From NCBI GenBank assembly GCA_001643675.2, contig LSRY02000019.1, positions 310,001 to 374,000 on the forward strand: a DNA stretch of 64,000 nucleotides, given 5' to 3'. This stretch comes from Monocercomonoides exilis PA203. Lineage: Eukaryota; Protista; Preaxostyla. Made by a program: the position numbers and the translations under genes. The notes below the pieces were generated by a model. It did no database searches. It saw only the letters and a program-made list of their open reading frames with translations, and was not told the origin of the DNA. Below, piece by piece: positions 34,232 to 64,000 of this stretch. How positions within the stretch are numbered: position 1 is the stretch's first letter; every line of letters starts with the position of its first letter.

Positions 34232-34476
34232 TTTTAATTGTTATCAATGAAATAACTTCTATAAAAGATCAATGGATGTATTATGACGTGCATCAAAAAC
34301 AAAAAAAATAAAAAATAAGGTTGATTTATTGTTTTGTTTTTAAAAAATATGCAATGCATTTCTTTCAACTTTTCAATTACGATAGCGTGCAATTCAATGT
34401 ATTTTTGATTGCCAATGAATTGCTTTATAAATATTGTTGAAAAAACACCATCGAAAAAAAATATTTTTTGAAATTT

Positions 34477-35130: not shown

Positions 35131-35542
35131 TAGTAACAAAAAATGCATTATTCGTTTAAAAAATATGTGTGACAGATAAAAAATTTTTGTCTAGTCCATT
35201 AGCAATTGAGAATTAACTTCAGAATTAGTCTTTTTCCACTATTTTTTATTCGAAATTGGTAAACTTATTTTTCGAAATAATTAAAATTGTATATTATTTT
35301 ATTAAATATTTTTTGTGAAAAATTGATTTTTGGATAAATGTTAGAAAGTGACAAAAATGTAACATTCAGTCGAATTCGAAATATTGATGAGAAATTGTAT
35401 CTCATATATTATTATTTATCGAAAAACATAAAAAAAATTAACATTTTCAGAAAAAAAATCATCATCGTTGAAATCGTATAATTTTCGAATGAATTCAAAT
35501 CACATTGTTAGAGTATGCAATTTTTTATCAAGACTAACGATA

Positions 35543-37192
35543 GGGTGATCCATTTTATTTTGCGCTAAGAATAAAAAAAGTGTCAATTAAAAATGAATTA
35601 TCAAAAAATTATTGATATAACAAAGTTTTGCAATTTGATTGGAATGAACACTGAACAAATTTATTAAAAACTTCAACTTGCTAACAGTTTGAAGCTTCCA
35701 GATTTCCGAACAATCTGTTCATGGAACGCAAAAATTCTTCGACGAAAAGATATCGACAAAAGGCATCACAACTGTGGAAGACCATGAAACGACGATTTAA
35801 TTATAATGATTCAACACGCTGCTGAAGACAACCAATATATAAGCTGCAAAGTGTTGGCGGAGTAATCACACATGGGGAAAACAACAGTTTTAAGAATTTT
35901 TCATGAAAAACTTCATTATCAATCTAGCAAAATCAGATGCGTTCCATATCCGCTAAGTGAAGATCAAAAAAAAATGTGTGTGCAAATTGGCTTTCAGTTT
36001 AAGTCTAAGCCGGATATAATCACATAGAATATAATCAACATCGGTTATAGTCACATTTTTTCTATGCGCCGACATTTTTTGTTTGTTTTTCATTCATTTT
36101 CCATCGCATATAATCACAGGGCTGAAAATATGTAATCACATTTTTTCATGTTATGGGTGATTTTTTCAATGAAAAATCGATTTTTTGATCAAAATTTACC
36201 ATTTTTCGCTTTTTCAAATATATGCTCAAATAAGTTAAAATAACACAATAAAATCCAAAAAATTATATTTTCTATTGAAAAATACGTTTTCATGTAGAAT
36301 TTTCAAAAACAAAAAATTTGACCCAAAATTAATTATTTCAAAAATTAATTTAAATATTTTCTGTGTTAAGCAGCATCGGATATTATCACAATCGGATATA
36401 GTCACAAAAAGTTGTACAAAAACCGATGTGATTATATCCGGTTTAGACTGTACTTGAAAATTTGGTCAATTTTAAAAAAAGGAATTTCGTAGGATTAATT
36501 ACTGGAGACGAATCGTTTTTCAACAAAAGATATAATTCGGATTGCGAATGGAGAAAAGATAAAACTGAAAAATCAACTATTTCTAATAACACGTTTTTTT
36601 GGATAAAATATACATGTTCAAAATTTTTTTTGGTTGATGAGTTGTTTTTTATAAAAAGAATATTTATTTAAAAAAAAGTCAAAATGGAAGCTGAATATTT
36701 TATTAAAACTGTATTTAAACAGATATGTCAGATCTGTGACGAGAAGTCTTCTGTTTCACCAGTGGATTTTCCCATTCTTTTTGATAACGCTCAACCTCAC
36801 ACCACTTCAGTTCCAAAAGATTTTGAAGAAGAAAATGATTTGAATATTCTTCCACATCAACCATATCCCCCTGATGTCGCTCCGTGTGATTTTTTTCTAT
36901 TCGGATGCATTAAACAGGCTTTGAAAGGAAAAAGTGTTTCTAATTCAGATGAATTGGAAATAGTAATAAGAAAAATTCTTCAATCTATATTTTATGAAAT
37001 GAATATTAGAGTTTTTAATAGTTGAATAACACTATTTCAGTTTATCACAACACTAGATGAAGATTGTTTTTAAAATAGACTTTTATTTTATACATCAATT
37101 TTTGTATCATATTTAATTATTTATTTATTCACTTATTCATTTATTTAATTTAAATTTTTTCTTTTTTTTTAGTAAAATGAAAAGGACCACCC
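35543..37192 (+). mobile_element. Decayed Tc1/mariner (DD34D-type) transposon
   Basis: TA|GGGTGATCCATTTTATTTT ... AAAATGAAAAGGACCACCC|TA. Transposase fragments CVPYPLSEDQK, ITGDESFF, LFDNAQPHT and PHQPYPPDVAPCDFFLFG, broken by stops, frameshifts and a MITE. Confidence 0.88.
36002..36450. mobile_element. MITE family A copy 1 (~450 bp) inserted in the mariner transposase
   Basis: TIRs (C)AGTCTAAGCCGGATATAATCACA / TGTGATTATATCCGGTTTAGACTG|TA. Near-identical to 40746-41197 in the opposite orientation. Confidence 0.88.
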
Positions 37193-37640
37193 TATATTTA
37201 TTCAAATGAAAACGATGAAAATAGACATTTTTCTCGTTTGAAAAAATAAATTAATTAACATTCTTAATTCTTCATTTGTTTAATGTTGTTCTCCTTCACA
37301 AATGTGATTACAGATTCCTTTTCTTGATAAAAAATTGCATACTCTAACAATGTGATTTGAATTCATTCGAAAATTATACGATTTCAACGATGATGATTTT
37401 TTTTCTGAAAATGTTAATTTTTTTTATGTTTTTCGATAAATAATAATATATGAGATACAATTTCTCATCAATATTTCGAATTCGACTGAATGTTACATTT
37501 TTGTCACTTTCTAACATTTATCCAAAAATCAATTTTTCACAAAAAATATTTAATAAAATAATATACAATTTTAATTATTTCGAAAAATAAGTTTACCAAT
37601 TTCGAATAAAAATGGTGAAATAAATTATTATTACAAAATA

Positions 37641-38193
37641 TACCTCTGTGACCTGACAAATAACTTGAAGCCTCGTCTGTCACAAAAAAAAAAGAAAGAA
37701 AGAAAGAAAAAAGAAAAATAAAAAGAAAAATAAAAAGTAATGAAATGAAAAGAATAGAAAAGAATAGAATAGAATAGAATAGAATAATCAAATTTAAATA
37801 AAATAAAATAAAATTTAAACTTATTAAACGATAGCTAAAACTTCTAAAGGTTTTCAAAGCATTTTGGAAAAGATTTGTTGATAGCATCTGTAATATCTTG
37901 TCGTTTTTTCTCTTATGTCAGTGACCGTCAGTGGCTGTCAATGACAAATTGTGACAAAAATATTCCTCAACTGACATTTCGTGTCAAAAAAAATAAATAT
38001 TGGGAACATGATCACATAAAAAAATTTGATTTTTTCAAAATAATAAGAATTATTTCATGAAGATTTTCAAATAAATTATTATAGCAATAAAGAATTATGA
38101 AATCGTTATAAATAACCCTTTTTGACAAGTCCAAAATATCTTGTCAGTCATTTTGTCATTTTTTCAATTTTCTCTTGTCATGTCACAGAGGTG
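37641..38193. mobile_element. MITE family B (553 bp) with many TGACA/TGTCA motifs and an internal AAAG/AATAG microsatellite
   Basis: TA|TACCTCTGTGACCTGACAA ... TTGTCATGTCACAGAGGTG|TA. Confidence 0.78.
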
Positions 38194-38314
38194 TATTACA
38201 AAATTTCGGGATTTCGTTATCTAAATTAATTTTCATATATTTATTCATTTCGTTTTTTTCTTCAAACTGAACTTCGTATCATTTATAAAATAAATAAATA
38301 TTTCATTGCCGTAT

Positions 38315-38569
38315 GGGTGATTATTTCTGAAATTTTATTTTTTCATTCAGAATTTTCGGTTCGAAAAATTCACTCGAATATTAACAAAAGAACGCTGAAA
38401 AGTGAAAATATTTATAAAAGATAACTTTATCTTTGTTTCAGCTATAACATTTGTTTTTGAAATGGTTTTGATGATTTTTATTATCCAAATACAAAATCTC
38501 TTCCTTATATCAAACAACCTTAGAGAAATCAACACCCCGAAATAATATGTGATTTCAAAAATACTAACC
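38315..38569. mobile_element. Degenerate GGGT...ACCC MITE with AT flanks
   Basis: AT|GGGTGATTATTTCTGAAA ... TTTCAAAAATACTAACCC|AT. A related right end lies at about 43800-43844. Confidence 0.55.
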
Positions 38570-39343
38570 CATATTCTGACTCCATTTACAGTCACTGACT
38601 TCATTTATAGTTCGATGATCAAAAAATATTCTTAATTTGATTTTTTGTCAATATCTTTTTTAAAAAACCAATTTTTATTCAACGCTTATTTGAAATAATA
38701 TTTTATAATATTTGCGTTCAAAATTAATGTTGCAATAATTGAGGTTCCGATATGAAAATAATTTTTCTGTTTGTCAGGAAATCAAATATATCTGTCAATG
38801 ATCAAGAAGTCACACATAATAAGTTAAGATGAATGGTTATTTTTGTCTTCAATAAAATTGAAATATGTTACGTGACATCAAGATCATATCATAATTATAG
38901 AAAGAAGTGAAAGTTCAATCAAAAAAAGGAAAAATTATTCTTCTTTATTCTTCAAAATTTCATTAACAAATTTATAGTTTTTGAATTTCAAAAAAATCTT
39001 TTTCTCAAATCCAAGATTTTAAAATCAATCATCGTCATCAAGAAAGAGACTGAAAAAGAGTTACCAACCTGATTTAAAATCATTAAGGAAGAAAAGAGAA
39101 ACACAAATTACCAGTGTCGAAGAGCAAACATAATATTCAGATGAAAGTCAAGAGGAAAAAGAACATTACGGATTGTTTCTTGATGAGTTTATTTAGAAAA
39201 AGGAAAAATGGTTATTCTTTTTGAAAAGTCGCAGATGTTTAATACACAAAAAATTATTCAACATCGAAAAACTTTAATTCAAAGTCGAGAATCATTCGAA
39301 ATCGTAAAAGTTTAATTCGAAATCGAAAAACTTTTAACAACAT

Positions 39344-39583
39344 GGGTGATTCTTTTTGAAAAGTCACAAATGTTTAATTTTCAAATATATCAAAAATTTC
39401 ATATTTTGCTCAAATTTCTGTTTCAGCTCACAAATCTCCTCAAGAACGTTTGAAATGGCATTTTAAAGGAATAGATTTTATTATAACTGAGTTTGATATT
39501 TGTTAACAAAATATTTAGCAAAATATGAAATTTTTGGTTTATTTGAAAATTAAACATTTGTGACTTTTCAAAAAGAATCACCC
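39344..39583. mobile_element. MITE family C copy 1 (240 bp, ~70-bp TIRs)
   Basis: AT|GGGTGATTCTTTTTGAAAAGTCACAAATGTTT ... AAACATTTGTGACTTTTCAAAAAGAATCACCC|AC. Confidence 0.85.
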
Positions 39584-40070
39584 ACATCGAAAATTCTTTA
39601 TCATCAAAATATTTGAAAAAAATTTAAAAATACATACTCATGTGAGTTTCTTTTATTTCGAAGCACGATCTGAGAAATGTGTCAATTTCAATTAGAAATA
39701 TATTTTTTGATGTTTTTTGGTGTTTGATTTTGTATAATAGTGGAAAAAGGATAAAACAGAATTTTTATTAAACTTTTCACGTGTATTCAGGTGATTAGAA
39801 GGAATTTGAGGAAAAAATAAAAGTGATAGGATAGTTCATAATCTCGTTTTTTGTGCAAAATGACAGAAATTTGTTTCATTTATTGAAAACAAAATGTTTT
39901 GAATTTCATTTATTGCATTGGACGCTGATAAAATATAACATTTTCAATTTTCAAAATGAGAAAAGTATCAATGAATATCAGTCTTTATCATTGAAAACAG
40001 TAGTTAAAAATGAAAAAAAACATTTCCAATAAATAAGCATAAGTTATTATCAACATTTGTTTCAATATAT

Positions 40071-40338
40071 GGGACAAAATATTTGATTTCAGGCATTTTC
40101 ATTAAAAAATTATGCATCTTGGATGATATTTTTGTGATAAAATAATTTGAAGAAAATAGGTTTATTTTTTGATATTCGTTTGAGGTCACAAAACATTTTG
40201 TTATTATATCAATGATGCCTGTTTACGGATATGAAAATCAAATTTATTTTGAAATCTGGCAAAGTTTAATAATGTAATTAGTGAAACAATTTTTTCAAAC
40301 TTTGTGCATAAAAAGCTTGAAAGTCCGTATTTTCCCCC
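40071..40338. mobile_element. MITE family D copy (268 bp), AT target duplication
   Basis: AT|GGGACAAAATA ... GTATTTTCCCCC|AT. Homologous to 42191-42457, ~43956-44223 and ~44437-44708. Confidence 0.75.
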
Positions 40339-40344
40339 ATATGT

Positions 40345-40581
40345 CTAAATTTTTTTGAAAAGTTCCTTTTGTTTTATTTTCAAATAAAATAATAATTTTA
40401 AATTTCGATCAAATTTCGGCTCTCAAATACGAAATTACATGAAAATTTAAATAGAATCTTGACAATGTTATTATTTCCATTTTTGTGAAGTTTCGTATTT
40501 AAGAACCGAAATTTGATCGAAAGATGTTTTTTTTTCTTTTTTATTTGAAAATTAAACAAAAGGAACTTTTCAAAAATTTTT
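40345..40581. mobile_element. Palindromic MITE family E copy 1
   Basis: TTTTTGAAAAGTTCCTTTTGTTT...TTCGATCAAATTTCGG / CCGAAATTTGATCGAA...AAACAAAAGGAACTTTTCAAAAA. Confidence 0.7.
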
Positions 40582-40745
40582 ATTCAAATTTTCATTTGTT
40601 TTGATTTGAATAGAAATTCTGAACTAATAAACTTCTTTATCGATTAGAAAAATTTTATTTTTGATGTTGAATTTAAGTTTTTCGATATTGTCTTTAACTT
40701 TTTCAATTTTGAATAATTTTTGATGAATCGGAATAAACAGAAATA

Positions 40746-41197
40746 CAGTCTTAACCGGATATAATCACATCGGTTTTTGTACAACTTTTTGTGACTATAT
40801 CCGATTGTGATAATATCCGATGCTGCTTAACACATAAAAAAATAAAAAATTAATTAACTAATTAATTAATTTTTGGTCGAATTTTTTGTTTTTGAAAATT
40901 CTACATGAAAACGTATTTTTCAATAGAAAATATAATTTTTTGGATTTTATTGTGTTATTTTAACTTATTTGAGCATATATTTGAAAAAGCGAAAAATGGT
41001 AAATTTTGATCAAAAAATCGATTTTTCATTGAAAAAATCACCCATAACATGAAAAAATGTGATTACATATTTTCAGCCCTGTGATTATATGCGATGGAAA
41101 ATGAATGAAAAACAAACAAAAAATGTCGGCGCATAGAAAAAATGTGACTATAACCGATGTTGATTATATTCTATGTGATTATATGCGGCTTGGACTG
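40746..41197. mobile_element. MITE family A copy 2 (452 bp), TA target duplication
   Basis: TA|CAGTCTTAACCGGATATAATCACA ... TGTGATTATATGCGGCTTGGACTG|TA. Confidence 0.9.
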
Positions 41198-41224
41198 TAT
41201 TCCGATTTTGAACATTTTTTTGCA

Positions 41225-42030
41225 ATGAACCCATCAAACATTGAAAGTTTGCCTATAAGAATTTTTAAACGATTTGATACTAGAATATGTGCATTGCGGA
41301 GAAATTTGATGGATTTATCACCAAAAATTTTCCAATAAGATTTAATTTAGAATGACCCAGATATTAAACATTTGAAACTTTTCAAAAAGAACAACCAATA
41401 TGAGAAACTAAGAATCACAAAAGAAGCAGTTATCGAATTGTGCAATTTGATTTCATTCCACATAAGCACATTGCCAAAAAGAGGCCAAACAAAAATTCTT
41501 TTCATTCACAATCAATTAATTGTTTGCTCAGAATGGTTATCGAGAAAAACCATTGTGAAAGGAATTGTTTGTTTTCATGGATTGTCAAAAACAATATCCA
41601 GCAATAGTATTCGAGAGATAAGGCCATATTTCCTTTTAGTCTTGGACACGATATTCAAAAACCAACCAAAACCTAAAAAGTTCATTTCCGAAGTATTTCC
41701 GTCTGTCGCCTTGCCTGTTGACGCAACCACTGTCAAACGTTCTGTTCCAGTTGGAGACTTTGATATGTTAGGCAATTGTTTGATGGGCACCACAACTCTT
41801 ACAGCATGATAATAGAAGTTGTTGTATCATCCTGGCCTCCTTTTAAAGCGTTGTTTGTTTCGAAATCAGTTCCTGGAAGTGTTCATGATGTTACCCTTTT
41901 CAGAAATGGCAAGCATCGGTATGTCGAATATCTAAAAAAAAACAGAAGAAGAAAAGATTGGAAATGCCGTTCATAACAAAAATGACAGTTGGTTAATAAT
42001 GGCTGATAAAGTGTTTCAAGACCATAAGCC
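41225..42030 (+). pseudogene. PIF/Harbinger-ISL2EU-type (DDE_Tnp_4-like) transposase remnant
   Basis: ALPVDATT, FDGHHNSYSMIIEVVV, LFVSKSVPGSVHDVTLF and WLIMADKVFQ across frameshifted ORFs. Confidence 0.78.
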
Positions 42031-42190
42031 CAAAACGTCAAACAAATTTCTTCAATAAAAAAATTTTACAAAGCAAACAAAACTTTGAATAAAAAAGATT
42101 TCCAACATTCATAATTTGAATCCATTTTTTTATCTAAAATTAATAGAACTATTTATCAATTCATCTCTTATTATTTGAATTATAAAATAT

Positions 42191-42457
42191 GGGGGAAAAT
42201 TCAGGTTTTCAAGCTTTTTTGCACAATGCATGAAAAAATTGTTTCTCTTATAACTTTGTTTCTCATTCTCAGACGACAAAATAAATTTGATTTTCAGATC
42301 GGTATTCAAACATCATTGATATAACAACATTATGTTTTGAGATCTTACTTGAATTGCATATAATAAATCCATCTATTTCAAATTTTTTGATCACAAAAAA
42401 TTCATCCACAGTGCATAATTTTTTAATGAATATGCTTGAAGTGTCATATTTCACCCC
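42191..42457. mobile_element. MITE family D copy (267 bp), AT target duplication
   Basis: AT|GGGGGAAAATTCAGGTTTTCAAGC ... GCTTGAAGTGTCATATTTCACCCC|AT. Confidence 0.78.
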
Positions 42458-42659
42458 ATATTATGAAACTATCATATTTTGAAATTTGATTAACGGGATT
42501 CACTACGAAACAAAATTTTTATGCAAACATTTCTGATAAGTTTTGTTTCAATTTTGATGTTAATTTTTTCATGAAAGCTCTTCTGAACCAGTTTTCATCA
42601 TTCATATTATATTGCTTTCCACTTATCTAATTGATGAAGGTGACAGTTTGAGTGTATAT

Positions 42660-42899
42660 GGGTAAATCTTTTTGAAAAGTCGCAAATGTTTATTTTTCAA
42701 ATAAATTAAAATTTTCATATTTTGCTCAAATTTCTGTTCCCATTCACGAAACTTCACTAATATGGAATCAATTTCTGGATAATGCTATTTCAAACATTCT
42801 TGAAAAAATTCGTGAGTAAATACAGAAATTTGAGCAAAATATGAAAATTTTGATATATTTGAAAAATAAACATTTGCGACTTTTCAAAAAGAATTACCC
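42660..42899. mobile_element. MITE family C copy 2 (240 bp), AT target duplication
   Basis: AT|GGGTAAATCTTTTTGAAAAGTCGCAAATGTTT ... AAACATTTGCGACTTTTCAAAAAGAATTACCC|AT. Confidence 0.87.
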
Positions 42900-43955
42900 A
42901 TATAAAAAAATTGTAAAACTTATTTCTATATATGATTATTCTTTTTATTCGAAATTTGAAAACTTTTTATTCAAATTTCAAAAAATTGAGTATAATTAAT
43001 TGAAAAGCTTTTTCGTCAAAAAAATTGTTTTTGTTTGAATATTATAAAGTTTTTATAATGTCTTTTTTTCATAATTCATAAAAAGGAAGAAAAATTGAAT
43101 CTTAATAAATATTCATTGAAAACAAACATAAAAGTGAACACTTTTTCTGAAAAAAAATCATAATCATTGAAATCTGAAATTTTTCAAATGAATTCACCTC
43201 ACATAGTCAAATTACACATCAATCAATCAAAAATAGTTATTTGCATCAATTTACAAACTGAATATAATAATTTTTCACATTCGAATATATTCATGAATGA
43301 ACTTTCGGAATTCTTTATAGCAACGTGGTTAACCCACACAATTGCACAAACCAGCACACATGATTTCGAAAAACAGTTTGGATAATTTTTTTCGAAAAAA
43401 TAATTCATATTTTTTAATTTGACTCATTATAAGAGGAAAACAATACAAATTAAAAATCAAAGCAATTCATTAAGTGGCATTTAATATCCGAAAGGAATGA
43501 AGTTTTTATTCAAGTATTTGGTCTTTAACTCATTCGCTCATCATCATTAAAACAATAATTAATAATTAAGATAAAATTGTTTTGATTATTATTATATCTT
43601 TTGAAATCCTTTTTTTCATTCAAAATCTTCGGTACAAAAATTTTTCTTGAAAATCAACAAAAGAACATTGAAAAGTTAAAAGGCTTATTGAATACATTTT
43701 TATCTATGATTCGGCAAAAAACATTTGTTTTTTGAAAAAAATATCATGCTTTTTCTCCTTTGACTTTAAATTTTCTATCAAAAAACTAACAATCTTTGAA
43801 AAATCAACACCCGGAAAAAGGATATGATTTTAAAAATAATCACCCAATAAAAAATTATTTTTAAAAAACTTATAACATATTCCGTTAATAGACACAGCAA
43901 TTATACAATTATATTTTATTTATGGCAAAGAATGCAAAAGAATGAGAGAACATTT

Positions 43956-44223
43956 AAGACAAAATATTTGACTTCAGGCATTTTCATAGAAAAATTATGC
44001 ATCTTTGATGAACTTTTTGTGATCAAAAAATATGAAAAAAATGGGGTTTTTTTTTTGAAATACATGTGAGGCCACAAAGCATTTTGTTGGTACATCAATC
44101 ATGTTTGTTTTCAGTGTGAAAACTTATTTATTTTGTAATCTGAGAAAGCGAAATAAAGTTATGAGAAAAGTGATTTTTCAATGCCTTGTGTAAAAAAAAG
44201 TTTTAAAGTCCGTATTTTCACCC
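43956..44223. mobile_element. MITE family D degenerate copy
   Basis: GACAAAATATTTGACTTCAGGCATTTTCAT...AAGTCCGTATTTTCACCC is colinear with 40071-40338. Confidence 0.65.
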
Positions 44224-44436
44224 AAATAAATAAATAAAATCAAAATCAAAATAAAAATTTTAAAAATATTAATAATTTTTTATGAAAAAAAAATAAATGA
44301 AAATGAAAAATTATTAAATCGGGAAATGTGAATTTGAGTAAATAATTCATAGAAACAGAAAGAACATTCAATTTTGATTAATAAAGATAATTGAAAAACA
44401 AATAATGATTTGAATCCCATAAAATTGTTGTTAATG

Positions 44437-44708
44437 TGGGGGGATATACGGTCTTTCAAAGCTTTTTTTTTACATAAAGCATCGAAAAATTGCTTCACTC
44501 ATAACTTTGTTTCGCTTTCTCAGATTTTGAAACAAATTTGATTTTCAGATCCGTAAACAAACATCGTTGATATCATAATATGAAGTTTCCCAACATTTCA
44601 CGAATGTCAAAAAATGGACATATTTTTTAGTATATTTTTATATAAAAAAAGTCAATGAAAAGTACACAATTCTACAACGAAAATGCCTGAAGAAAAATAT
44701 TTTTTTTC
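44437..44708. mobile_element. MITE family D degenerate copy
   Basis: GGGGGGATATACGGTCTTTCAAAGC...ATAACTTTGTTTC...ATTTGATTTTCAGATC is colinear with 42191-42457. Confidence 0.65.
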
Positions 44709-44829
44709 ATGTGGGGAAACGTTTGTCAACATTATTTCTTCAAAAAAATCTCCTTTTCATCCACTTTTTTTATGTGTACAATATGAAACTGTCATCTCTC
44801 CCCTGTTCTTTGATCTCTTTTTCACATTA

Positions 44830-45500
44830 ATAAGGTCACAGGAGATGAGTCGGTTGATGGCATCCATCTGCTTTGACTGTTAAAAGAAGAGTGAAGTGAT
44901 GAATAGGAGGCATTTTTAAAAATTGAATGAAAGGGCATTTTCTTGGAACATTTCTCAAGTTTTCTCTTTTGCCCGATGACTGAAAGCTGATTTCATTCAA
45001 CTGAAATACCAACGAAAAGTGACACTTTTTTTGTTTCATTAATTCACGCAAATGCATCAAAAACAAAAGAACATTGCTTTTCGAAAAAGTGCTTTGTCGA
45101 GCATTGTCCAATTTAATTGTGTGAATTGTTTTGAGCTGTTGGTGTCTTTCGAGAAGGCTACACACACTTCGTATGCTTTGCATCAAAATGCATATAGCAG
45201 ATTTTTTTGTATATTGAATAAAAATTTTCCTTGCCTGTGAAAAAAATTAATTTAAAGACGAAATTGAAATTGTTTAACAAGCTGTTCTAGGGATGTCTTT
45301 AGTTGTTAACTGTGTAACAACATCATCCCAATTGAAAAGTGTTTTTTCCTATCTTTCCGCTTCTTCTTCCGATAAATACCTTAGCCTTCAATTTTTCACT
45401 ATCAATTCTCCAATGAAAATCATTTGAGAAGCTCTTTGTTGGCGATAATTTCGATTGAACTGTTATTTGATTAAATAAATCTTTTCCTTTTTCATTCCAT
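44830..45500 (-). pseudogene. pogo/Tigger-like (DDE_1) transposase remnant
   Basis: IKLDNARQ...LVFQLNEISF...HFTLLLTVKADG..PTHLL resembles the NxDET / TLLxxxxADG..P.LLW part of DDE_1 transposases. Confidence 0.55.
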
Positions 45501-45635
45501 GCATTTCTGAAAACATCAGATAGGATTTCACAGCAACTTTTTATTTTTTCAGAAAAATAAAAATTAAGAAGAAAACCATATTTAAAAAGAATAATCCATA
45601 GAAATATTTAATTCATTATTATTATTTAATAATTT

Positions 45636-45878
45636 ATCTAAATAAATTTGAAAAGTTCCTTTTGTTTAATTTTCAGAAAGAATAAAAATTTCATATTTCA
45701 ATCAATTTTCTGTTCTCTCTCATGAAACTTCACAAAAATGGAAATAATAACATTGTCAATATTTTGTTTTCATAATAGCACCATATGGTGAGTGAAAACA
45801 GAAATTTGATAGAAACATGAAATTAAGATTTTGATAAAAAATAAAACAAAAGGAACTTTGCAAAAAAAATTTTAACAT
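45636..45878. mobile_element. Palindromic MITE family E copy 2
   Basis: TTTGAAAAGTTCCTTTTGTTT ... AAACAAAAGGAACTTTGCAAA. Shares the internal GAAACTTCACAAAAATGGAAATAATAACATTGTCAA with 40345-40581 (inverted). Confidence 0.68.
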
Positions 45879-45954
45879 ATCTTCATGGTTTTCATTATTG
45901 GAAAAAATAAAAAAAAAAACAAAAAAAAAAAAAAAAGATCAGTCAGTGCCTGAT

Positions 45955-47343
45955 TTTTTATATTGGTGAAACTGGAATCAGTTTTTATAAATCAGATAAA
46001 AAGAACATTATCACATTATCAGATCGAAAACAGCCAGTATTACATTTATAACAGCATGAGCCTAAAGTGACATTAATTTTCGGAGTTTTCTCCGATGGAT
46101 CTTCTTTGAATCCATTGATGTTGTGGCCTTTGAGAACAGTTCCGAAAGATTTTCAACTTTTGAAGTTTTGAAATGTTGGAATTATTGCCAATTGAAGTGA
46201 ATGGATTTCAAAAAGTGACTGCGAAGAAATTATGATGAAAAACATTTTACCTGCAATAGACAAAAAAAGAATTGAACTGAATGGATCGGAAGCATCGGCT
46301 CTTTTTATCATGGACGGGCATTCACCGAGGCTTTGCTTGTTTGTTTGTACATGGTGTCACAAACATTCTATTGAAATTGTTATTCTTCCATCTCATACAA
46401 CTCATTTTTCTCAACACCTTGATCGCTATGTATTTGTGTAAATCAAAAAATAATTGTATTCATCTTTAAAGCCTCCTTCCGAAAGTGGAGTATCTGCCAA
46501 TAGAAAAACTCTTGTTCCAGCTTTGGAAGATGCAGTGAGTGCTGAGCTTGATTCCAGCATAATCAGAAAATAATTTTATGAATGCGGAATTGAGCCCTTC
46601 GATCCTTCCGTTGTTCTGGATCGATTGCCCAATCAGTTGTCAATCGCAAAAATTTCTTCGCTAACTTTTTCATGCACTTTTTCCCTTATCATGAACAAAA
46701 AGATAATCACAAGTGATGAATTTGTTGAGGAGAACACCCCACGTGAGGAAGGTTTGAATTATTAAAATCATATTTTTAAGGTTTATTTTTCAGAAAATTG
46801 TTTTTTTTTTTTTTTTTCACAGGAAAATGTGAACTGAACAAATATAGTATCGTCCAATCCAAGCTGATATCAATGATTCAACATAATGATCAACAGAACA
46901 AAAGAAGAGATAAAACAATTTCTGGACAAAACTTTGAAGCAGAAATCAGGGAGAATGTATTGTTTGCGGCTGAAAAACGAAAAAGAAAGAAGGTTTCAAA
47001 ATCATCTTGGGGAAGACAGTATGATTTTAACAAAATAGCATTTCTCTTTTCAAAAAACAAAATCTTTGAATACTGATTTATAAATATTCGTTTTTGTTTT
47101 ATAAATAACAAATGCCAAACACTTCGGTAAATGTATTTTTTCACACAAGAGTAATTAAAAAAGAAAAGAATTCATTCAAAAAGCCACTTTAATAGAAATT
47201 ATTTTCCATTTTTTAGTTTTTTTCCAGATGTATGTGAACAACAAATTCAATTAAACAAAGAAAAATATTAGAATTTGAAGAAATTGAAAACCGTGGGGAA
47301 TGTTTCCGGGTTTTGTCCCTTTCCCGGGTTTTGTCCATGACTA
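45955..47343 (+). mobile_element. 5'-truncated pogo-like (DDE_1) transposon with a right TIR
   Basis: YIGETGI, VTLIFGVFSDGSSLNPLMLWP, LFIMDGHSPR and ILPSHTTHFSQHLD. Right end GTTTCCGGGTTTTGTCCCTTTCCCGGGTTTTGTCCATGACTA|TA with a duplicated motif. Confidence 0.78.
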
Positions 47344-47575
47344 TATATGAGATACTATTTCTCATATTCATTCCTAATATTGACTTAAGATAATTTTCCC
47401 ATCACTTTCTGATATTCATCCAAAAATTATTTTTCACAAATAAATATTTCCAAATAATACTCAATTTGATTCAATTTGAACAAGAAGTTAAACGATTTCG
47501 AATAATAAGTTAACCAAATCTGAATAATAAATGGTGTAACACTGAAGTCACCTTTTCTCAAAAAAATCAATAATA

Positions 47576-51715: not shown

Positions 51716-51773
51716 CATGAGTGTTTCCGACTAAACAACAACGAGAAGAAGTTCGAAGAAAGAGAAGAAAAAG

Positions 51774-54499
51774 GGCATAGGTGTAACTGCGTCCCTTTTG
51801 CAATTCTTGTTTTTAGACATTAATTTTGTGATGTTTGAAATGCAAAAATTATTTAAAAACTTTTGTATGGACCGATTTTTCGCAAAAATTTTTGTTTCTC
51901 GTGAAAAAACTATTTTAAAAAATGACCCATAAATATGAGTATTTTTTCAAAAAATAAATAAAACAAGATAATTATGAAATAAAAAGTAGATAAAATGTTA
52001 TTTATTATTATATTGTCCTATTTTAATAATAATGATTTGGGAAATAAAACATAAAAAAAAATAAATTAAAAAATTAAAATATTTTGATCAATCCCACAAT
52101 TAAATTTTTAATATCCAAAAAATAAGAAATTAGTTTCTTTCGTCAAGAATAGAACCCTCGCTTGCGAACATATAACAAATCAAATGTTTAGAAATATTAT
52201 AAAAGTGTGCACTAAATGATTATTAACATTTCATTCAATTCTTTACAATTTTTGATTATGATTTTTAGGAAGATTATTTGCATGCTGCACAAGGATATTA
52301 TTATTAAACTATGGTGCCAATGAATAAAGAAGAACAAACAAATCGTGTGAAACATTCTTTTTAATTATTAACATTGTTTTATTAAAATTTTTGATAAAAC
52401 ATGAAAAATTTTATTATCTTTCTTCCAAAGAGAGATGCGTATGAAAACAAAGCTCCTGTTAACACAGCAACAGCAAAGAAAATAGAGGAGAAATGTTTCA
52501 GGCAACGAAATGAAGAGAAAAAATGAATTTTGCATTTGTGAAGATGAAGTTAGATACAGACACAACCAGCATGAGGAATGTATTTTCATTGATTGTTACA
52601 ACATCACATCCCAGATCAATGAAAGTCAATTTCTGTTTGATCTTCGAGAGGGACATAACACTCGTAATAATGCAATTAATGGAAAAGATTATTGCGAACA
52701 CCACAGCGATACGGATTTGAATGGATTTGTAACAATTCATCAAAGTGATACGATTATTGTGAGCAGCGTGAATGGATCAAACGAAAAACAGTGTGGAACA
52801 AACACACTTCCATGTTATTCAATTGAGCATGGGCTGGTGCATCTGACTTCTGATTTCATGAGCGTGATGATTGTTGTTGAAGAGAGTGTAATAGGAAGAG
52901 ATAAATCTGAAGGAGATGGGTTTTAAAGGGGGAGAAGGAATGGAGAAAAACACATCTCTGCGGATATTGGATGAGGGATGTCAATTGGGAGGAATCGCGA
53001 GTGAAAGAGGATCATCATTTTTCATCCCTGTCTTGGAAGAAGTGAAGAGCACAACACAGGCGAGTGGGGACATGGACTTGAGCATTCGTGGGAAGCTGCT
53101 TCTTCCTCACAAATTGTCTCTGAAGATCAGCATGAAAAATGGGGATGAAGAGGAGATTGTGAGAAAAGGGATTGAAGAAGAAGGGTTTGTTTCAGAGAAT
53201 GAGATTCGCTCAGTTATTTCATGTTCAGAATTGGAGAAAGTGAGAGACGAGACAGAAGTGAGCGTGTGCATTCTGTTTGGAAAAGTTGATTCTCCTTCAT
53301 CAACTGAGTCTTTCATTCTGAAAAATGGAAGCGAAACACATTCAAGTGGAGATGAAAAACTTGTTGAGGGAGGAAAAGAAGGAAAATCATTTTGGCCGAT
53401 TGCTGTTGTTGTTTGAGTTGTTGTTTTATTGTTTGTAATCATTGTTTCTGTGATATTTGCAGTCAGATGAAGAAAACAAAAGAGAAGAACAAAGGAATTG
53501 GAGGAGATTGTGAATGACACAGTGAAAAAGAATCCGAAGGCATTTGAGGTGGTGACGATGGAGATGTCGCCTGAAGAGCAGTGGAGGAGAGCAGAGAGGG
53601 AAGCAGAGAAGAAGAATGAAGAGAGGATAAAGAAGAGAATATATGATACGAATATGCAACATTCGGAGTCGTCTGAGCATTTGTTGAGTGAGAGTGGATC
53701 AACTGAATACATTCTTGGAAAAGACTCAGACAAAATTCCTGATTGGGCATTGGAGAAAGATGAAGAAGAAGAGGAAGATACAAGAAAGAGAACACCTTCA
53801 CCTTCCATCTCTTCCACATCCACAACTGATTCAGATTCAACATTTGTTCGAGGAGAGGATCTGTGCCCAACCACCTCATCCATGTCGAATCTTGTCGATG
53901 CAATGGCCTGCTCATCTCCTCATGAGAAGCTGATTGTGGATCTGAGGGATTCGCTGTTCATGCTGTTGCATGGAAGGAATAAGACGAAGGAGATGGCAAT
54001 AGGAACTCTGAAGGAGAGGGAGCAAACAGCTGCTCAGATCCTGTTCTGGGTGGCTAATCTCGCGCTCCATTCATTTGACGAAATGAACAATACTCTTTCT
54101 TCCCTTGCCAACCTCAGTCCTCACATTGTGTTGTTTTCAGAGCACATGGTGATTGCGATTGCCATGCACTCCGACTGCTCCTCTGATGATTCAGATTCAT
54201 CCTCCATCTCATCATCAACAGTTGTGACATCTGCCAGTGGCAACGATGATGATGATGATGACTCCATTCCCTCATCGGCATTTGAAGAGGATGAGGATGC
54301 CTTCAGAAAGGAGTGCCTGAGGTGGAAGGCACCAGAGCTGCTGATGAACAAGAAGATGGGGGCAACAAAGGAGTCAGTTGCCTTTTCGATTGGGATGATG
54401 TTGTGGGATTGTTTGACCCTTCAAATCCCTATTGGAGATTATAAGGCAGAAGTGGCAGGGCAGAAGATTGTGAATGGAGAGATATCGAATATGAAAAAA
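51774..54499 (+). repeat. Left inverted arm (2,726 bp)
   Basis: Reverse complement of 57250-59988. Mirrored ORFs are identical, e.g. 52510-52926 vs 58836-59252 and 52916-53416 vs 58346-58846. Confidence 0.95.
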
Positions 54500-54758
54500 T
54501 GGTTTGAAGGACAGGCTAAAGCAGAAAGTTAAGATGAGTGTGTTATCGCATTTTGAAGACAGACTATCGCACGTGGTAATAAAGTGTGTGCTGGTTGAAG
54601 ATTTTCCTGAAGGTGCAACTGTGAAGACAATGACTGACATAATCGGGATTGCAGCAGAGTCCATTGGAAAGAGTGCATTGTCTGAGCATATTTGTGTCTT
54701 GCGCGTGAAGATGGAACAAATAAGTGAAGCAAATGTTAATGCCAATATGTGTTTGTGA
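52510..54758 (+). pseudogene. Captured fragment of a membrane receptor / pseudokinase multigene family (left arm)
   Basis: Ectodomain piece (CGTNTLPCYSIEHG), a TM segment with in-frame stops (FWPIAVVV*VVVLLFVIIVSVIFAVR*RKQK) and a kinase-like C-lobe (LRWKAPELL...VAFSIGMMLWDCLTLQIP). Frameshifts present. Confidence 0.8.
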
Positions 54759-55008
54759 AGCATGGTTTCAACAATATAATGAAACAAATGAAAATTTATA
54801 TGCTGATGGACATGCGTATGGACTTATTTATGTTTACGATTACAAGATTGTTAACTCATTTGCATCGAAATGTGTAATTCAAATTTCACAAAAAGGAGAT
54901 GAAGTTTGTTTTTATTAGAAATTCATTTACGAACACTTGCGTTAATTAGGATTTTTTTTGCAACGTGATCAAAATGTGATGTGATTGATAGTGTTGTGAA
55001 ATAAAAAT

Positions 55009-56550
55009 TCATAAATTTATTGGAGACTGTTCTGTTCCAATATTTGTTGACTTAATAAAACTTCTTAGTATTTTTCGATTAAGAATTGCATTTGTTTTAT
55101 CTTTTTCTTTTTTCTCCATTTCTTCAATCTTTCTCTCTTTTTTTTCACAAAACTTTAGGGTTTCAAACTCTAACGTTTTTAACTGTTGGCTGTCGTTGTT
55201 TTTCAGAAATCTTCCATCGCATGATCTATATCTTTTCTTTTTCTTCTTTCTTGCAGTTTTGCAATCAATGTCTGATGAAAATATATCATCTTCAGTTTCA
55301 ACTTTTGTTTCTGTTTCTTTCTCTTCTTTCTCTTCTTTCTCTTCTTTCTCTTCTTTCTCTTCTTTCTCTTCTTTCTCTTCTTTCTCTTCTTTCTCATCTT
55401 CATCATCTATTTTTCTTCTTTTTAAATTTGTTGATTCTTTTATTTCTAATATTAGCTTTAATGATCTTTTTTTCTTCAACATTTCATCAAGTTCATTTTC
55501 ATCATACATTTCATAGTTGTTTCTTTTTCTCAATTCCTCTTTCTTTAATAAATAAGAAGACAATTTAAATTTCCTTTCTTTCAGAAGAATGCTTTTCAAA
55601 CTTGCAACGCTTTCATTGTAAGAACGAAGAAAAATATCCAAACTTTTCTTGCTGATTTTTGAAAGTTCCTTTATGTATGCTGCAGGTGTGAGTCTGTTGT
55701 TGAATCGATATTGAAATTCATAAACATATTCTTTTGTCTTAATGAATGTTCTTCCTCTTTTTGGAATGTGGTTTTTCAGATGAGACCACACACTTTCGAT
55801 TGTTTGAGTGTAAACTTTAGGATTTTCAGGCTTAACAAAATTGAGAGAATGATTTACACTGTCAATGGTGAAGCCGTTTTCACTAATGCAGTTATATGCC
55901 GACCATTTGTCAGACATTATAGTTGAAGATCTTTCAATGTTCTTTTTTACAAAATACAATATGGTATCAGCTTTTCGATCTGGAAGAAATTCGACAATCA
56001 ATTTTTGTGGCTTTCCAATTTCTTTTCTCTCTACTACTCCCCATAGCCATTGCTGTTCTCTGCATCTCCCAACACCGTTCTTTCTTTTATGAATTAAAGT
56101 TTCATCTATTTCCACTATTCGATCTTTTCCTATTTTTTCCATTTCGAATGTTTCAAAATAACAGCATATTCTTCTTAACTTTTCAAATAATTTCACTACT
56201 GTTTTGTTTGATATTTTCGATTCAAAAGTGACTTCCTTAATTGAGTGTTTGTACCAAAAATGATACAACAATGATGTAAGTTTGAATGGTGAAAGATGAA
56301 ATTCCATAAAAATTGAATCATAATTCCAGCTGTAATTTTTCCCACATTTCGTGCATTTATAAGCATAGTAATCACTTTCTTTTTTTTGCATCCTTAATTC
56401 CATTGCTTTTTCGCATTTCCAGCACATTCGATTTCTTTTTATTATCCCAAATTTGGAAAGCAATTCAATAGCCAATTGATTTTTCCCATTCGATCGCATT
56501 AAAAACTCACTGAATGTTAATTCTTTTTCAAATGATTTGTTTTCAACCAT
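55009..56550 (-). CDS. Merlin/IS1595-family (ISXO2-like) DDE transposase, intact, 513 aa
   Basis: N-terminal CWKC..CTKC zinc ribbon. VEIDET, WLWGVVER, PDRKADT, TIMSDKWSAY, VNHSLNFV, TQTIESVWSHLK and YEFQYR. Charged C-terminal extension. Confidence 0.93.
   Translation of the reverse strand: MVENKSFEKELTFSEFLMRSNGKNQLAIELLSKFGIIKRNRMCWKCEKAMELRMQKKESDYYAYKCTKCGKNYSWNYDSIFMEFHLSPFKLTSLLYHFWYKHSIKEVTFESKISNKTVVKLFEKLRRICCYFETFEMEKIGKDRIVEIDETLIHKRKNGVGRCREQQWLWGVVERKEIGKPQKLIVEFLPDRKADTILYFVKKNIERSSTIMSDKWSAYNCISENGFTIDSVNHSLNFVKPENPKVYTQTIESVWSHLKNHIPKRGRTFIKTKEYVYEFQYRFNNRLTPAAYIKELSKISKKSLDIFLRSYNESVASLKSILLKERKFKLSSYLLKKEELRKRNNYEMYDENELDEMLKKKRSLKLILEIKESTNLKRRKIDDEDEKEEKEEKEEKEEKEEKEEKEEKEEKETETKVETEDDIFSSDIDCKTARKKKKKRYRSCDGRFLKNNDSQQLKTLEFETLKFCEKKERKIEEMEKKEKDKTNAILNRKILRSFIKSTNIGTEQSPINL
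55316..55395. repeat. 9-bp tandem repeat (TCTTTCTCT)n encoding (EEK)n in the transposase tail
   Basis: About 8 consecutive units read directly. Confidence 0.9.
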
Positions 56551-57104
56551 TTGTGAAATGGATTGACTTTGCTAAAGTTAAAAAATTTGAATTAATGTAT
56601 ATTAATAATGGCTCTTTTTTTTATGTTTTCGAGTGAAATATGCACTTTAATATTTTGAATTTTTAAAGAAAGAAAAACATATTTTATTTTAATATTATTT
56701 GCACAGTTTTTAATGAAGTTTCAAAATAAAACAACATTTATAAAAATACAAAAATGCAAGAAATTCAAACATTGAATTCATTCGATTTTTCAATATATGC
56801 AAAAATAAAGAGTTTGTTCTATAAAACAATTATCACAATTCAGAACAAAAAAAATTTTATTCCCTTTGAGTTAATTTGAAGTATTTATTTGCATGCAACA
56901 ATCCATGTATAAACGCATTCACACATACACATTTCATTTGTTTCAAAATTGTCTTTTCAATTTCTTTCGCTTTTGTTGTTTGTGCTGTTCCCATTGCCAA
57001 CAACGATAATATCTTTGTGCTCATCTATCAGAACACACTCCACTATTCTGCTGTTTTTTTGAGCAAAGAAATCGACTCTTTCTTCTCAAATTCCTCCCGC
57101 ATAG

Positions 57105-59252
57105 CACATCGCATTTGACACAATCTGTATTGCTGCATAGTCACGAAACTACCAAATGAATTTTTTTATCATTTCTGAAAATGATATTCTATCTGGCATC
57201 TGAACCGGTACACTTTTTTTATCATATATTTCAGTCGAAACCACTCAACTTTTTTCATATTCGATATCTCTCCATTCACAATCTTCTGCCCTGCCACTTC
57301 TGCCTTATAATCTCCAATAGGGATTTGAAGGGTCAAACAATCCCACAACATCATCCCAATCGAAAAGGCAACTGACTCCTTTGTTGCCCCCATCTTCTTG
57401 TTCATCAGCAGCTCTGGTGCCTTCCACCTCAGGCACTCCTTTCTGAAGGCATCCTCATCCTCTTCAAATGCCGATGAGGGAATGGAGTCATCATCATCAT
57501 CATCGTTGCCACTGGCAGATGTCACAACTGTTGATGATGAGATGGAGGATGAATCTGAATCATCAGAGGAGCAGTCGGAGTGCATGGCAATCGCAATCAC
57601 CATGTGCTCTGAAAACAACACAATGTGAGGACTGAGGTTGGCAAGGGAAGAAAGAGTATTGTTCATTTCATCAAATGAATGGAGAGCTCCATTCGCCACC
57701 CAGAACAGGATTTGAGCAGCTGTCTGCTCTCTTTGCTGAAGACTCCCAATCGCCATTTCTTTCTTCTCATTCCTTCCATGAAGCAGCATGAACAGCGAAT
57801 CCCTCAGATCCACAATCAGCTTCTCATGGGGGAGACGAGCAGGCCATAGCATCCACCAGATTCGACATGGATGAAGTGGTTGGACACAAATCCTCCCCTC
57901 GAACAAATGTGAAATCTGAATCAGTTGTTGATGTGGTTGAAGTGGTTGAAGTCGATGAAATGGATGGAGAAGGTGTTCTCTTCCTTATCTCTTCTTCCTC
58001 ATCTTTCTCCAATGCCCATTCAGGAATCTTGTCAGAGTCTCTTCCAAGGATGTATTCAGTCGAACCACTCTCAGATAGAAGATGCTCAGATGACTCTGAA
58101 TGTTCCATATTTGAATCATACACCCTCTTCTTTATCCTCTCTTCATTCTTCTTTTCTGCCTCTTTCTCTGCTCTTCGCCACTGCTCTTCAGGCGACATCT
58201 CCATCGTCACCACCTCAAATGCCTTCGGATTCTTTTTCACTGTGTCATTCACAATCTCCTCCAATTCCTTTGTTCTTCTCTTTTGTTTTCTTCATCTGAC
58301 TGCAAATATCACAGAAACAATGATTACAAACAATAAAACAACAACTCAAACAACAACAGCAATCGGCCAAAATGATTTTCCTTCTTTTCCTCCCTCAACA
58401 AGTTTTTCATCTCCACTTGAATGTGTTTCGCTTCCATTTTTCAGAATGAAAGACTCAGTTGATGAAGGAGAATCAACTTTTCCAAACAGAATGCACACGC
58501 TCACTTCTGTCTCGTCTCTCACTTTCTCCAATTCTGAACATGAAATAACTGAGCGAATCTCATTCTCTGAAACAAACCCTTCTTCTTCAATCCCTTTTCT
58601 CACAATCTCCTCTTCATCCCCATTTTTCATGCTGATCTTCAGAGACAATTTGTGAGGAAGAAGCAGCTTCCCACGAATGCTCAAGTCCATGTCCCCACTC
58701 GCCTGTGTTGTGCTCTTCACTTCTTCCAAGACAGGGATGAAAAATGATGATCCTCTTTCACTCGCGATTCCTCCCAATTGACATCCCTCATCCAATATCC
58801 GCAGAGATGTGTTTTTCTCCATTCCTTCTCCCCCTTTAAAACCCATCTCCTTCAGATTTATCTCTTCCTATTACACTCTCTTCAACAACAATCATCACGC
58901 TCATGAAATCAGAAGTCAGATGCACCAGCCCATGCTCAATTGAATAACATGGAAGTGTGTTTGTTCCACACTGTTTTTCGTTTGATCCATTCACGCTGCT
59001 CACAATAATCGTATCACTTTGATGAATTGTTACAAATCCATTCAAATCCGTATCGCTGTGGTGTTCGCAATAATCTTTTCCATTAATTGCATTATTACGA
59101 GTGTTATGTCCCTCTCGAAGATCAAACAGAAATTGACTTTCATTGATCTGGGATGTGATGTTGTAACAATCAATGAAAATACATTCCTCATGCTGGTTGT
59201 GTCTGTATCTAACTTCATCTTCACAAATGCAAAATTCATTTTTTCTCTTCAT
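57105..59252 (-). pseudogene. Captured fragment of the same receptor / pseudokinase family (right arm)
   Basis: Mirror of the left-arm fragment with the same stops, plus a +1 frameshift near 57830. It has a different 3' continuation beyond 57250. Confidence 0.8.
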
Positions 59253-59988
59253 TTCGTTGCCTGAAACATTTCTCCTCTATTTTCTTTGCTGTTGCTGTGT
59301 TAACAGGAGCTTTGTTTTCATACGCATCTCTCTTTGGAAGAAAGATAATAAAATTTTTCATGTTTTATCAAAAATTTTAATAAAACAATGTTAATAATTA
59401 AAAAGAATGTTTCACACGATTTGTTTGTTCTTCTTTATTCATTGGCACCATAGTTTAATAATAATATCCTTGTGCAGCATGCAAATAATCTTCCTAAAAA
59501 TCATAATCAAAAATTGTAAAGAATTGAATGAAATGTTAATAATCATTTAGTGCACACTTTTATAATATTTCTAAACATTTGATTTGTTATATGTTCGCAA
59601 GCGAGGGTTCTATTCTTGACGAAAGAAACTAATTTCTTATTTTTTGGATATTAAAAATTTAATTGTGGGATTGATCAAAATATTTTAATTTTTTAATTTA
59701 TTTTTTTTTATGTTTTATTTCCCAAATCATTATTATTAAAATAGGACAATATAATAATAAATAACATTTTATCTACTTTTTATTTCATAATTATCTTGTT
59801 TTATTTATTTTTTGAAAAAATACTCATATTTATGGGTCATTTTTTAAAATAGTTTTTTCACGAGAAACAAAAATTTTTGCGAAAAATCGGTCCATACAAA
59901 AGTTTTTAAATAATTTTTGCATTTCAAACATCACAAAATTAATGTCTAAAAACAAGAATTGCAAAAGGGACGCAGTTACACCTATGCC
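57250..59988 (-). repeat. Right inverted arm (2,739 bp)
   Basis: Reverse complement of 51774-54499. The 13-bp length difference lies wholly in the divergent patch 57670-58177. Confidence 0.95.
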
Positions 59989-59999
59989 AGAAAAAGAAT

Positions 60000-62418: not shown

Positions 62419-64000
62419 TCATAAGAAAAGATAAAAAAAATTTAAAAACATATCAATAAATAAATAATAACTAACTTGTAATAATGCATTTAACGATTGA
62501 ATGCTAAGGGAGCACCTTTTATCTCCAAGAATATTCTTCATTCTCGAAATCACTCTTTCGCAACTAACCTCACTGCATGGCGATGTAATTAAAGTCAGGC
62601 ACAATCCAGCGTATATTGTTTGAAGGTCTCCGTATGAGGAAAAAGCATTGTTAAAAATTTCCGAATCTTCTTCGATGACTGAAGATGAGCTTCCTTTAAA
62701 AAATCGTTGAAACAACTTGCAGCAACCGGATTTTATTTTTGGATCGTAATGTCCAATAACTTTATTTGCATATTTAGCAAACGAAGACAATAACCTGGGG
62801 AACCAATCTGTCAACAATTCTTTTTCAATCATTTTAATTGATTCTTCTTCTTTTTCGTATGATTGTTCTATGATCATTGACATTTTGCTTGTAGAAAATA
62901 GAATTTCCACCTCATCGAAAGATAAATTATCAATAATTTTTTCCTTATAAATGTCTGAATTTTCGTCATTTTCACAATCGCTGAGACTATCATCCATTGA
63001 TATTTCTTCATCCATGAAAGTTGTGCATTCTCGATGATCTTCAATTTCTGAAGAAGAAAAAGAAGAAGAGGAAGAGGAAGAAGAGGAAGAGGAAGAAGAA
63101 GAAGAAGAAGAAGAAGAAGAAGAAGGAAAGGAAGAAGAGGAGGAGGAGGAGGATGATGATGATATTGATGAAGATGATGAAGAAAAAGAAGAAGAAGATA
63201 TTTCAAACATGTCATTAATCGCTTCATCCTCTGCTTCAAGAAGTCCATATTCATCATCAGTTTCCTCACTTAATTCATCCTTTTCACTTAAAGATGAATT
63301 TATTGAGGTTTCAAATTTTGATGAATCAAAATTTTCATTGATGATTTCAATAATTTGTAAAATATCTTCCAATTTTCTGTCGTGATCATTTTCACATTCC
63401 TCTTTTGTTTTTTTCGCCAAATATTGAGTCATACCCTCACAATTGTCGACATCGTTTGACAGTTCGTCGTCAAGGTTCCTGAAAGCTTGTGCTTGCCGTT
63501 CGCTGTCCAATGGAGAAAACATCCTTGTTGTTGAATGAAAACCAGAGGAATAAAAACCCGAGCACATGTTTGAAGATGACATCAACGAAGATAAAGTGAT
63601 TGCAGTTTGCGAACAATCGGACAAAGCAATATTCTTTCTTCGTCCTTTATTAAAAGAAGGTCGAGTTTCTGGATCATAATTGAATTTATCAAATAAATTA
63701 AAATACTTGAAATAATCAAAAGAAAATTGTTGTGAACGGTACTTTTGCATTCCTGTTTGAGTTAAGGCAAATGATAGCACTATAAGTTCTCCTTTTGTTC
63801 CAATCAAAAAGTAATTATGTAATTGAATTAAAAAGTTTGTAATAACATTGTGCCAAACTCCATGATTGAAAAAAGTATGTTTTGATAAACAAATTAAAAA
63901 ACCTATTGCTTGCAAAATGAAAACAAATACATTGCACAGTTTCGAGTGATTGTTTTCAAACTGAAGATGTAATCGAAATAATGGATAAAGAATAATTTCC
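62419..64000 (-). CDS. hAT-family transposase-like protein, C-terminal part (5' end probably at or beyond the window edge)
   Basis: LTLITSPCSEVSCERVISRMKNILGDKRCSLSIQSLNALL matches the hAT dimerisation-domain pattern. Internal acidic and poly-Ser tract. A probable intron (CAA|GTTAGT) lies near 62474. Confidence 0.72.
   Translation of the reverse strand, partial: EIILYPLFRLHLQFENNHSKLCNVFVFILQAIGFLICLSKHTFFNHGVWHNVITNFLIQLHNYFLIGTKGELIVLSFALTQTGMQKYRSQQFSFDYFKYFNLFDKFNYDPETRPSFNKGRRKNIALSDCSQTAITLSSLMSSSNMCSGFYSSGFHSTTRMFSPLDSERQAQAFRNLDDELSNDVDNCEGMTQYLAKKTKEECENDHDRKLEDILQIIEIINENFDSSKFETSINSSLSEKDELSEETDDEYGLLEAEDEAINDMFEISSSSFSSSSSSISSSSSSSSSSSFPSSSSSSSSSSSSSSSSSSSSSFSSSEIEDHRECTTFMDEEISMDDSLSDCENDENSDIYKEKIIDNLSFDEVEILFSTSKMSMIIEQSYEKEEESIKMIEKELLTDWFPRLLSSFAKYANKVIGHYDPKIKSGCCKLFQRFFKGSSSSVIEEDSEIFNNAFSSYGDLQTIYAGLCLTLITSPCSEVSCERVISRMKNILGDKRCSLSIQSLNALLQVSYYLFIDMFLNFFYLFL

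Follow-up and report, generated by a model that had tools for sequence, protein, structure and literature searches.

How does a transposon come to carry parts of a host gene in both of its terminal inverted repeats (TIRs), and what keeps the two copies alike over kilobases? This question is raised by an 8.2-kb element in the genome of Monocercomonoides exilis PA203, a protist without a mitochondrion. The element lies at positions 51774–59988 of a 64,000-nucleotide stretch of contig LSRY02000019.1 (positions 310,001 to 374,000), which is here called the window. It is a Merlin of a newly found M. exilis family, and its inward-facing kinase gene fragments are probably subject both to conversion from arm to arm and to exchange with host paralogues. 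The genome searched was the M. exilis assembly (82.3 Mb in 101 contigs); C7, C25, C40 and similar names designate its contigs.

The element starts with GG, ends with CC, and is flanked by an exact 8-bp target site duplication (TSD), AGAAAAAG. Its family is recognised by the terminus GGCATAGG. An open reading frame (ORF) of 513 aa in the 2,750-bp spacer between the arms matches PF12762 (DDE_Tnp_IS1595; E 7e-21, 75 bits against a cut-off of 27), and its catalytic residues sit in Merlin-like motifs. By transposase, termini and TSD, the element is a Merlin. A sequence-only reading had already described the GG...CC termini, the TSD, an intact IS1595-type transposase in a 2.75-kb spacer and arms of 2,726 and 2,739 bp, and all of these were found at the same positions, with the arms 96.6–96.7% identical to each other. 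The open ORF with its DDE residues makes the element apparently autonomous. Given this ORF and a second copy that is 99.9% identical, the transposase is presumably active. A word-limited search for transposase homologues returned two M. exilis proteins only, a result that says nothing on absence elsewhere.

Seven Merlin families of M. exilis, F1–F7, have been published, with lengths of approximately 1.5 kb and TIRs mostly of 23–29 bp; the TIR range given for Merlin is 24–462 bp (PMC8101967). The TIRs of the window element exceed this range, which is descriptive and not a defining trait. The terminus of the window element is unlike all 5' termini of F1–F7 (supplement files 109–115) and its size also differs, indicating that its family is additional to the published seven.

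The terminus has 51 matches in the genome and none for the reversed control, which excludes chance. A copy on C40 is 99.9% identical to the window element and has an exact TSD of a different sequence. C23 and C37 have paralogous sites (96–99% identity) at which the flanks of the window element are joined with a single 8-mer. These empty sites indicate a young insertion into a low-copy repeat. Further, older paralogues of the target are present on C58 and C56. Near the element, a 498-aa ORF (62419–63915, minus strand) shows a weak match to the hAT dimerisation domain (E 0.007), so that the insertion may have hit a hAT-like element.

Among 23 paired termini, which are 2.7 to 14 kb long, 13 pairs including that of the window have exact 8-bp TSDs, two match at 7 of 8 positions, and eight are unmatched. 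No 9-bp TSD was seen among the pairs with exact TSDs. At C25:1201151–1214079, a 12.9-kb member contains a 3.9-kb one, and both have exact TSDs of their own. The copies and empty sites, as assembled, show a real and recently mobile element that moves as one 8.2-kb unit. Insertion as a single unit and recent activity had both been proposed in the sequence-only reading, and both hold. The reading had drawn the former from an ORF restored by removal of the element. The peptide it gave for the empty site is right, yet the frame has only 45 codons from stop to stop, so it is no evidence of a gene; as proof of insertion it was replaced by the paralogous empty sites. Other copies also carry long arms with different 8-bp TSDs, so the possibility that TIRs are short everywhere else does not apply.

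Each arm consists of a TIR core followed inward by two segments that derive from a giant receptor-like kinase gene. Measured against a 2,592-aa host frame, the cargo lacks the N-terminal 1,500 residues and has lost approximately 315 codons between its two segments. Two stops break up the transmembrane region. Both arms extend into the spacer as degenerate 3' tails of kinase genes, and these tails differ from each other. The right tail is common to the copies on C8, C61 and C80. The plan of the family is a TIR core, an inward-facing receptor fragment, the transposase, another inward-facing receptor fragment and a TIR core. The copies on C8 and C61 have the kinase part only on the right side, and the kinase piece of C61 is long, with frames of 586 and 1,280 aa. 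The C7 copy keeps a 916-aa open frame. A 2.7-kb relative, C27a, is without transposase and carries an ectodomain fragment. The 120 homologues of the arm ORF among the matches listed are all M. exilis proteins.

The sequence-only reading had suggested that a fragment of a host gene became part of both TIRs and is spread in two copies per jump. Host sequence is indeed present in both, but as a deleted, stop-containing fragment and not as a working gene. Most likely, the cargo is carried along without a function. By eye, neither an HRD nor a DFG motif can be recognised in the kinase-like domain (53498–54532 in the window, and also in host genes), and its catalytic-loop position reads ANLSPHIVLF in cargo and host genes alike. 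The missing motifs suggest a pseudokinase family.

The arms of each copy are far more similar to each other than arms are between lineages (75–86%). Within copies, arm identity is 99.9% over 2,719 bp in C25, 99.3% over 3,766 bp in C7, 99.9% over 1,583 bp in C8, and 99.6% over 2,503 bp in C61. The arms of C80 have one difference in 2.15 kb. In the window element, C40 and C80, the outer 1.8–2.1 kb is identical between the arms. The arms of the window element show no differences in the outer 1,811 bp, are again identical in the inner 420 bp, and have one clearly divergent zone of 495 bp in the left arm. In C80, 240 private substitutions at element positions 331–1474 are present in both arms. A Trp-to-stop change is found in both arms of the window element and in neither arm of C25. 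The private mutations and the new stop codon common to both arms indicate that the arms evolve in concert. The inner junction shows that the common ancestor of the window and C25 copies had its left arm overwritten with right-type sequence. The same asymmetric tract is found in two copies on different contigs.

The length of the repeat varies among copies, from 357 bp (C27a) through 1,583 bp (C8), 2,503 bp (C61) and approximately 2,720 bp (window element, C40, C25 and C80) to 3,766 bp (C7). Arm length is not a fixed TIR of the family; it is probably set by conversion between the arms. A sister family is also long-armed, so this trait is not limited to one family. Its member at C13:173742–184510 (10.8 kb) has a transposase 57% identical to that of the window element, 4.4-kb arms at 99.8% and an exact 8-bp TSD. 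The arms of the sister Merlin carry receptor ectodomain sequence; its terminus has 56 matches, with pairs of 1.7 to 20 kb.

Host kinase genes also form inverted pairs free of transposase, and their arms are 97.5–99.9% identical, which suggests that conversion between inverted repeats is common in the M. exilis genome. No transposase was found at the three host palindrome centres examined (Table 1). Many more inverted pairs with equal scores are seen among the genome search matches. For two host kinases, look-ups of their context gave no result. That most host kinase palindromes are giant TIR elements was rejected for two of them traced outward, where the repeat stops inside a long ORF.

The kinase part of the arms appears to have a history different from that of the rest of the element. 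Between the window and C25 copies, synonymous divergence (dS) of the transposase is 0.014 and the outer 1,470 bp differ by two bases. For the kinase segment of the same copies, dS is 0.80 in both arms, with a ratio of nonsynonymous to synonymous divergence (dN/dS) of 0.09. Compared with the window element, transposase dS and kinase dS are 0.086 and 0.68–0.78 for C80, and 0.11 and 0.78 for C7. Between copies, dN/dS of the kinase segment is 0.09–0.13, equal to that against host genes. High dS with low dN/dS indicates that the divergence arose in genes under purifying selection, and so points to replacement from host paralogues. On a tree, the kinase segments borne by elements are scattered among host paralogues (9 changes, against a mean of 10.6 when shuffled). 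On the simplest reading, the cargo appears to have been replaced in two steps: ectopic conversion of one arm by host genes, and transfer of the new sequence to the opposite arm.

The likely process is as follows. The transposase would cut at the GG ends and carry everything between them. With homology on both sides, a break in one arm could be repaired from the other arm by gene conversion. This would keep the arms identical and shift the inner edge of the repeat inward, and such shifts would make arm length vary among copies. The kinase part would also recombine with many host paralogues, and a tract received by one arm would then spread to its partner. The mismatch tract of 495 bp could be one that has so far entered a single arm, or a leftover still awaiting homogenisation.

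Several observations weigh against this reading. The tree is weakly resolved, with 7 of 26 branches starred, and some rows taken as host may lie in elements. Donor searches, each scoring 40 of approximately 1,000 candidates, gave no match better than 89% to the C25 segment or to either tract version, though the event should be recent. The full-length copies on C25 and C80 are among the eight pairs without matching TSDs; copies may have recombined with one another or lost adjacent sequence, and cross-matching of the unmatched TSDs between elements gave no convincing exchange partner. Both transposition and conversion are deduced from assembled sequence.

The best surviving alternative accepts the same element and conversion between its arms, and explains the kinase segments as old independent captures or as segments swapped between copies. 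The likeness of transposases and outer TIRs would then be due to conversion between elements. The lack of a near-identical host donor in the searches above agrees with this, and the eight unmatched pairs suggest recombination between elements. The left and right tails come from different kinase genes, indicating that the two cargos began as different paralogues. However, the window and C25 copies agree in both tails, in the inner junction and that of the deletion, and in one stop codon, and the divergent patches (element positions 1475–1587 and from 1802) lie within a near-identical backbone. Each arm version has best matches of its own, and these loci lie outside the known elements. We therefore consider old captures or swaps rather unlikely, and replacement from host paralogues the better account.

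Low dN/dS could also mean that the cargo is under selection within the element, with arms that encode receptor kinases or regulate them, for instance by way of truncated proteins or hairpin RNA. The kinase dN/dS of about 0.1 and the long open frames of C7 and C61 would fit such a function. The window fragment, which has lost its N-terminal region and an internal stretch and is interrupted by two stops and, in one arm, by a frameshift, does not, and a dS of 0.8 could not accumulate while that of the transposase is 0.014; selection on the cargo is thus improbable. That nanopore fold-back reads or Pilon made or perfected the palindrome is very improbable, even though the assembly was made with Canu, Nanopolish and ten Pilon rounds, its authors report imperfect polishing of multicopy sequence (PMC8767320), and the T-run indels of the C40 transposase resemble polishing errors, because the exact TSDs at distinct sites, the empty paralogous sites, the different tails within the spacer and the recurrence of the asymmetric tract on different contigs all argue otherwise, 75–82% of the words of 54400–57400 are contained in four sequencing runs (two from 2016, and not independent since they share one sample), and polishing may mask a few arm differences but not hundreds.

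Table 1. Positions of the parts of the Merlin element, of related loci and of other inverted repeats (window coordinates unless a contig is named)
Feature	Position	Strand	Remark
Left TSD, 8 bp	51766..51773	+	One copy at paralogous empty sites on C23 and C37
Left arm of inverted repeat, 2,726 bp	51774..54499	+	
AT-rich non-coding TIR core, ~700 bp	51774..52470 (inner edge approximate)	+	Starts with GG; common to related elements
Receptor ectodomain fragment	52582..52893	+	Residues 1543–1650 of 2,592-aa host receptor kinase, 42%
Membrane-proximal, transmembrane and kinase-like part	52907..54499	+	Host residues 1966–2500, 67%
Stop codons in left-arm kinase-gene part	53414–53416 and 53468–53470	+	
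Tract unlike right arm	53585..54079	+	dS 0.66, dN/dS 0.08; read as a putative unhomogenised conversion tract
Degenerate 3' tail of left cargo kinase gene	54500..54758	+	Beyond inverted repeat
Merlin/IS1595-type DDE transposase, 513 aa, open	55009..56550	-	D149, D214, E252; two N-terminal CxxC motifs
Degenerate 3' tail of right cargo kinase gene	56950..57249 (left edge approximate)	-	Unlike left tail
Right arm of inverted repeat, 2,739 bp	57250..59988	-	Mirrors left; one-base frameshift near 57832
Divergent tract, right-arm version	57670..58177	-	
Right TSD, 8 bp	59989..59996	+	
Terminus pairs without matching TSD	C25:1445505-1453691; C80:233961-242125; C25:765401; pairs on C57, C91, C29, C21, C52		
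Tail-to-tail host receptor-kinase palindromes	C10:1444200-1448200; C18:1181600-1184900; C8:1497500-1500500		Spacer short or none
Hairpin, 305 bp	34463-35144		
Inverted repeat, 291-bp arms	35243-37612		100%
Inverted repeat, ~455-bp arms	36002-41196		96%

Elsewhere in the window, a cluster of AT-rich inverted repeats occupies 34463–47508. It also contains several older inverted repeats, and probably consists of nested non-autonomous elements. One uninterrupted open frame (4406–18097, minus strand) spans 4,564 codons and has a leucine-rich-repeat-like start and acidic tracts. Another open frame (26662–28611, plus strand) contains the papain-like cysteine protease motif CGSCWAF, and may belong to the expanded cathepsin B genes.

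Receptor kinases were called the largest gene family of the M. exilis genome by Karnkowska et al. (PMC6759080), and according to Treitli et al. this family overlaps unclassified repeats (PMC8767320). The present elements link transposons to the family, with a modest share: approximately 25 elements in each of two families, some of them without kinase sequence, against approximately 1,000 candidate kinase loci. It could be speculated, though it is doubtful, that long-armed Merlins serve as mobile conversion relays, picking up kinase tracts, duplicating them in the other arm, carrying them to new sites and returning them to the kinase genes, with a near-complete gene transported now and then. 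If so, they would help to expand and diversify the receptor-kinase family and would explain part of the overlap with unclassified repeats.

The window family shares with the Merlin families F1–F7 the GG termini, 8-bp TSDs, a single DDE_Tnp_IS1595 transposase and the host species. It differs in its size of 2.7–14 kb, repeats of up to 3.8 kb and host-gene cargo. The TIR length of Merlin is hereby stretched approximately six- to ten-fold past the published range. The evidence for concerted evolution of these TIRs is unusually clean: private substitutions and a stop in both arms, the direction of conversion, and a tract in one arm only can all be seen.

Galileo, of the P superfamily, has TIRs of 18–1,250 bp, variable and extended with its own spacer DNA and tandem repeats (PMC3573991). 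As in Galileo/Foldback, TIR length is variable here, internal sequence is recruited into the TIRs and copies are chimeric, and conversion has been proposed as the cause there too (PMC3573991). The long, variable and internally extended TIRs of that group are matched by the window element, with 357 to 3,766 bp across copies. In contrast, the TIRs of Galileo grow without host coding sequence, the superfamily is another one, and the available part of that source reports no exchange with a host gene family (PMC3573991). No Pfam match to a P-superfamily (THAP) transposase was found in the window element, whose transposase is IS1595-type. Direct repeats of at least 100 bp are present in none of the stitched elements; shorter tandem units were not specifically searched.

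Pack-TYPE elements (Pack-MULE, Pack-CACTA, Pack-hAT, Pack-PIF and Pack-Mariner) are by definition non-autonomous plant elements (PMC8903248, PMC3310237), and the paper that defines them so makes no mention of Merlin. Like them, the window element has host coding fragments between its TIRs, copied through transposition. Unlike them, it keeps its transposase, its cargo is doubled into both arms, and the cargo was apparently replaced after capture.

Gene conversion also occurs between the arms of Y-chromosome palindromes, which are likewise kilobase inverted repeats homogenised from arm to arm. The window palindrome differs in being a mobile unit with transposase ends, and non-mobile kinase palindromes also occur in the M. 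exilis genome. In the literature, of which coverage was incomplete, no description was found of this combination or of an apparently autonomous gene-carrying Merlin. The window element joins capture of the Pack type with TIR extension of the Galileo type in an apparently autonomous Merlin.

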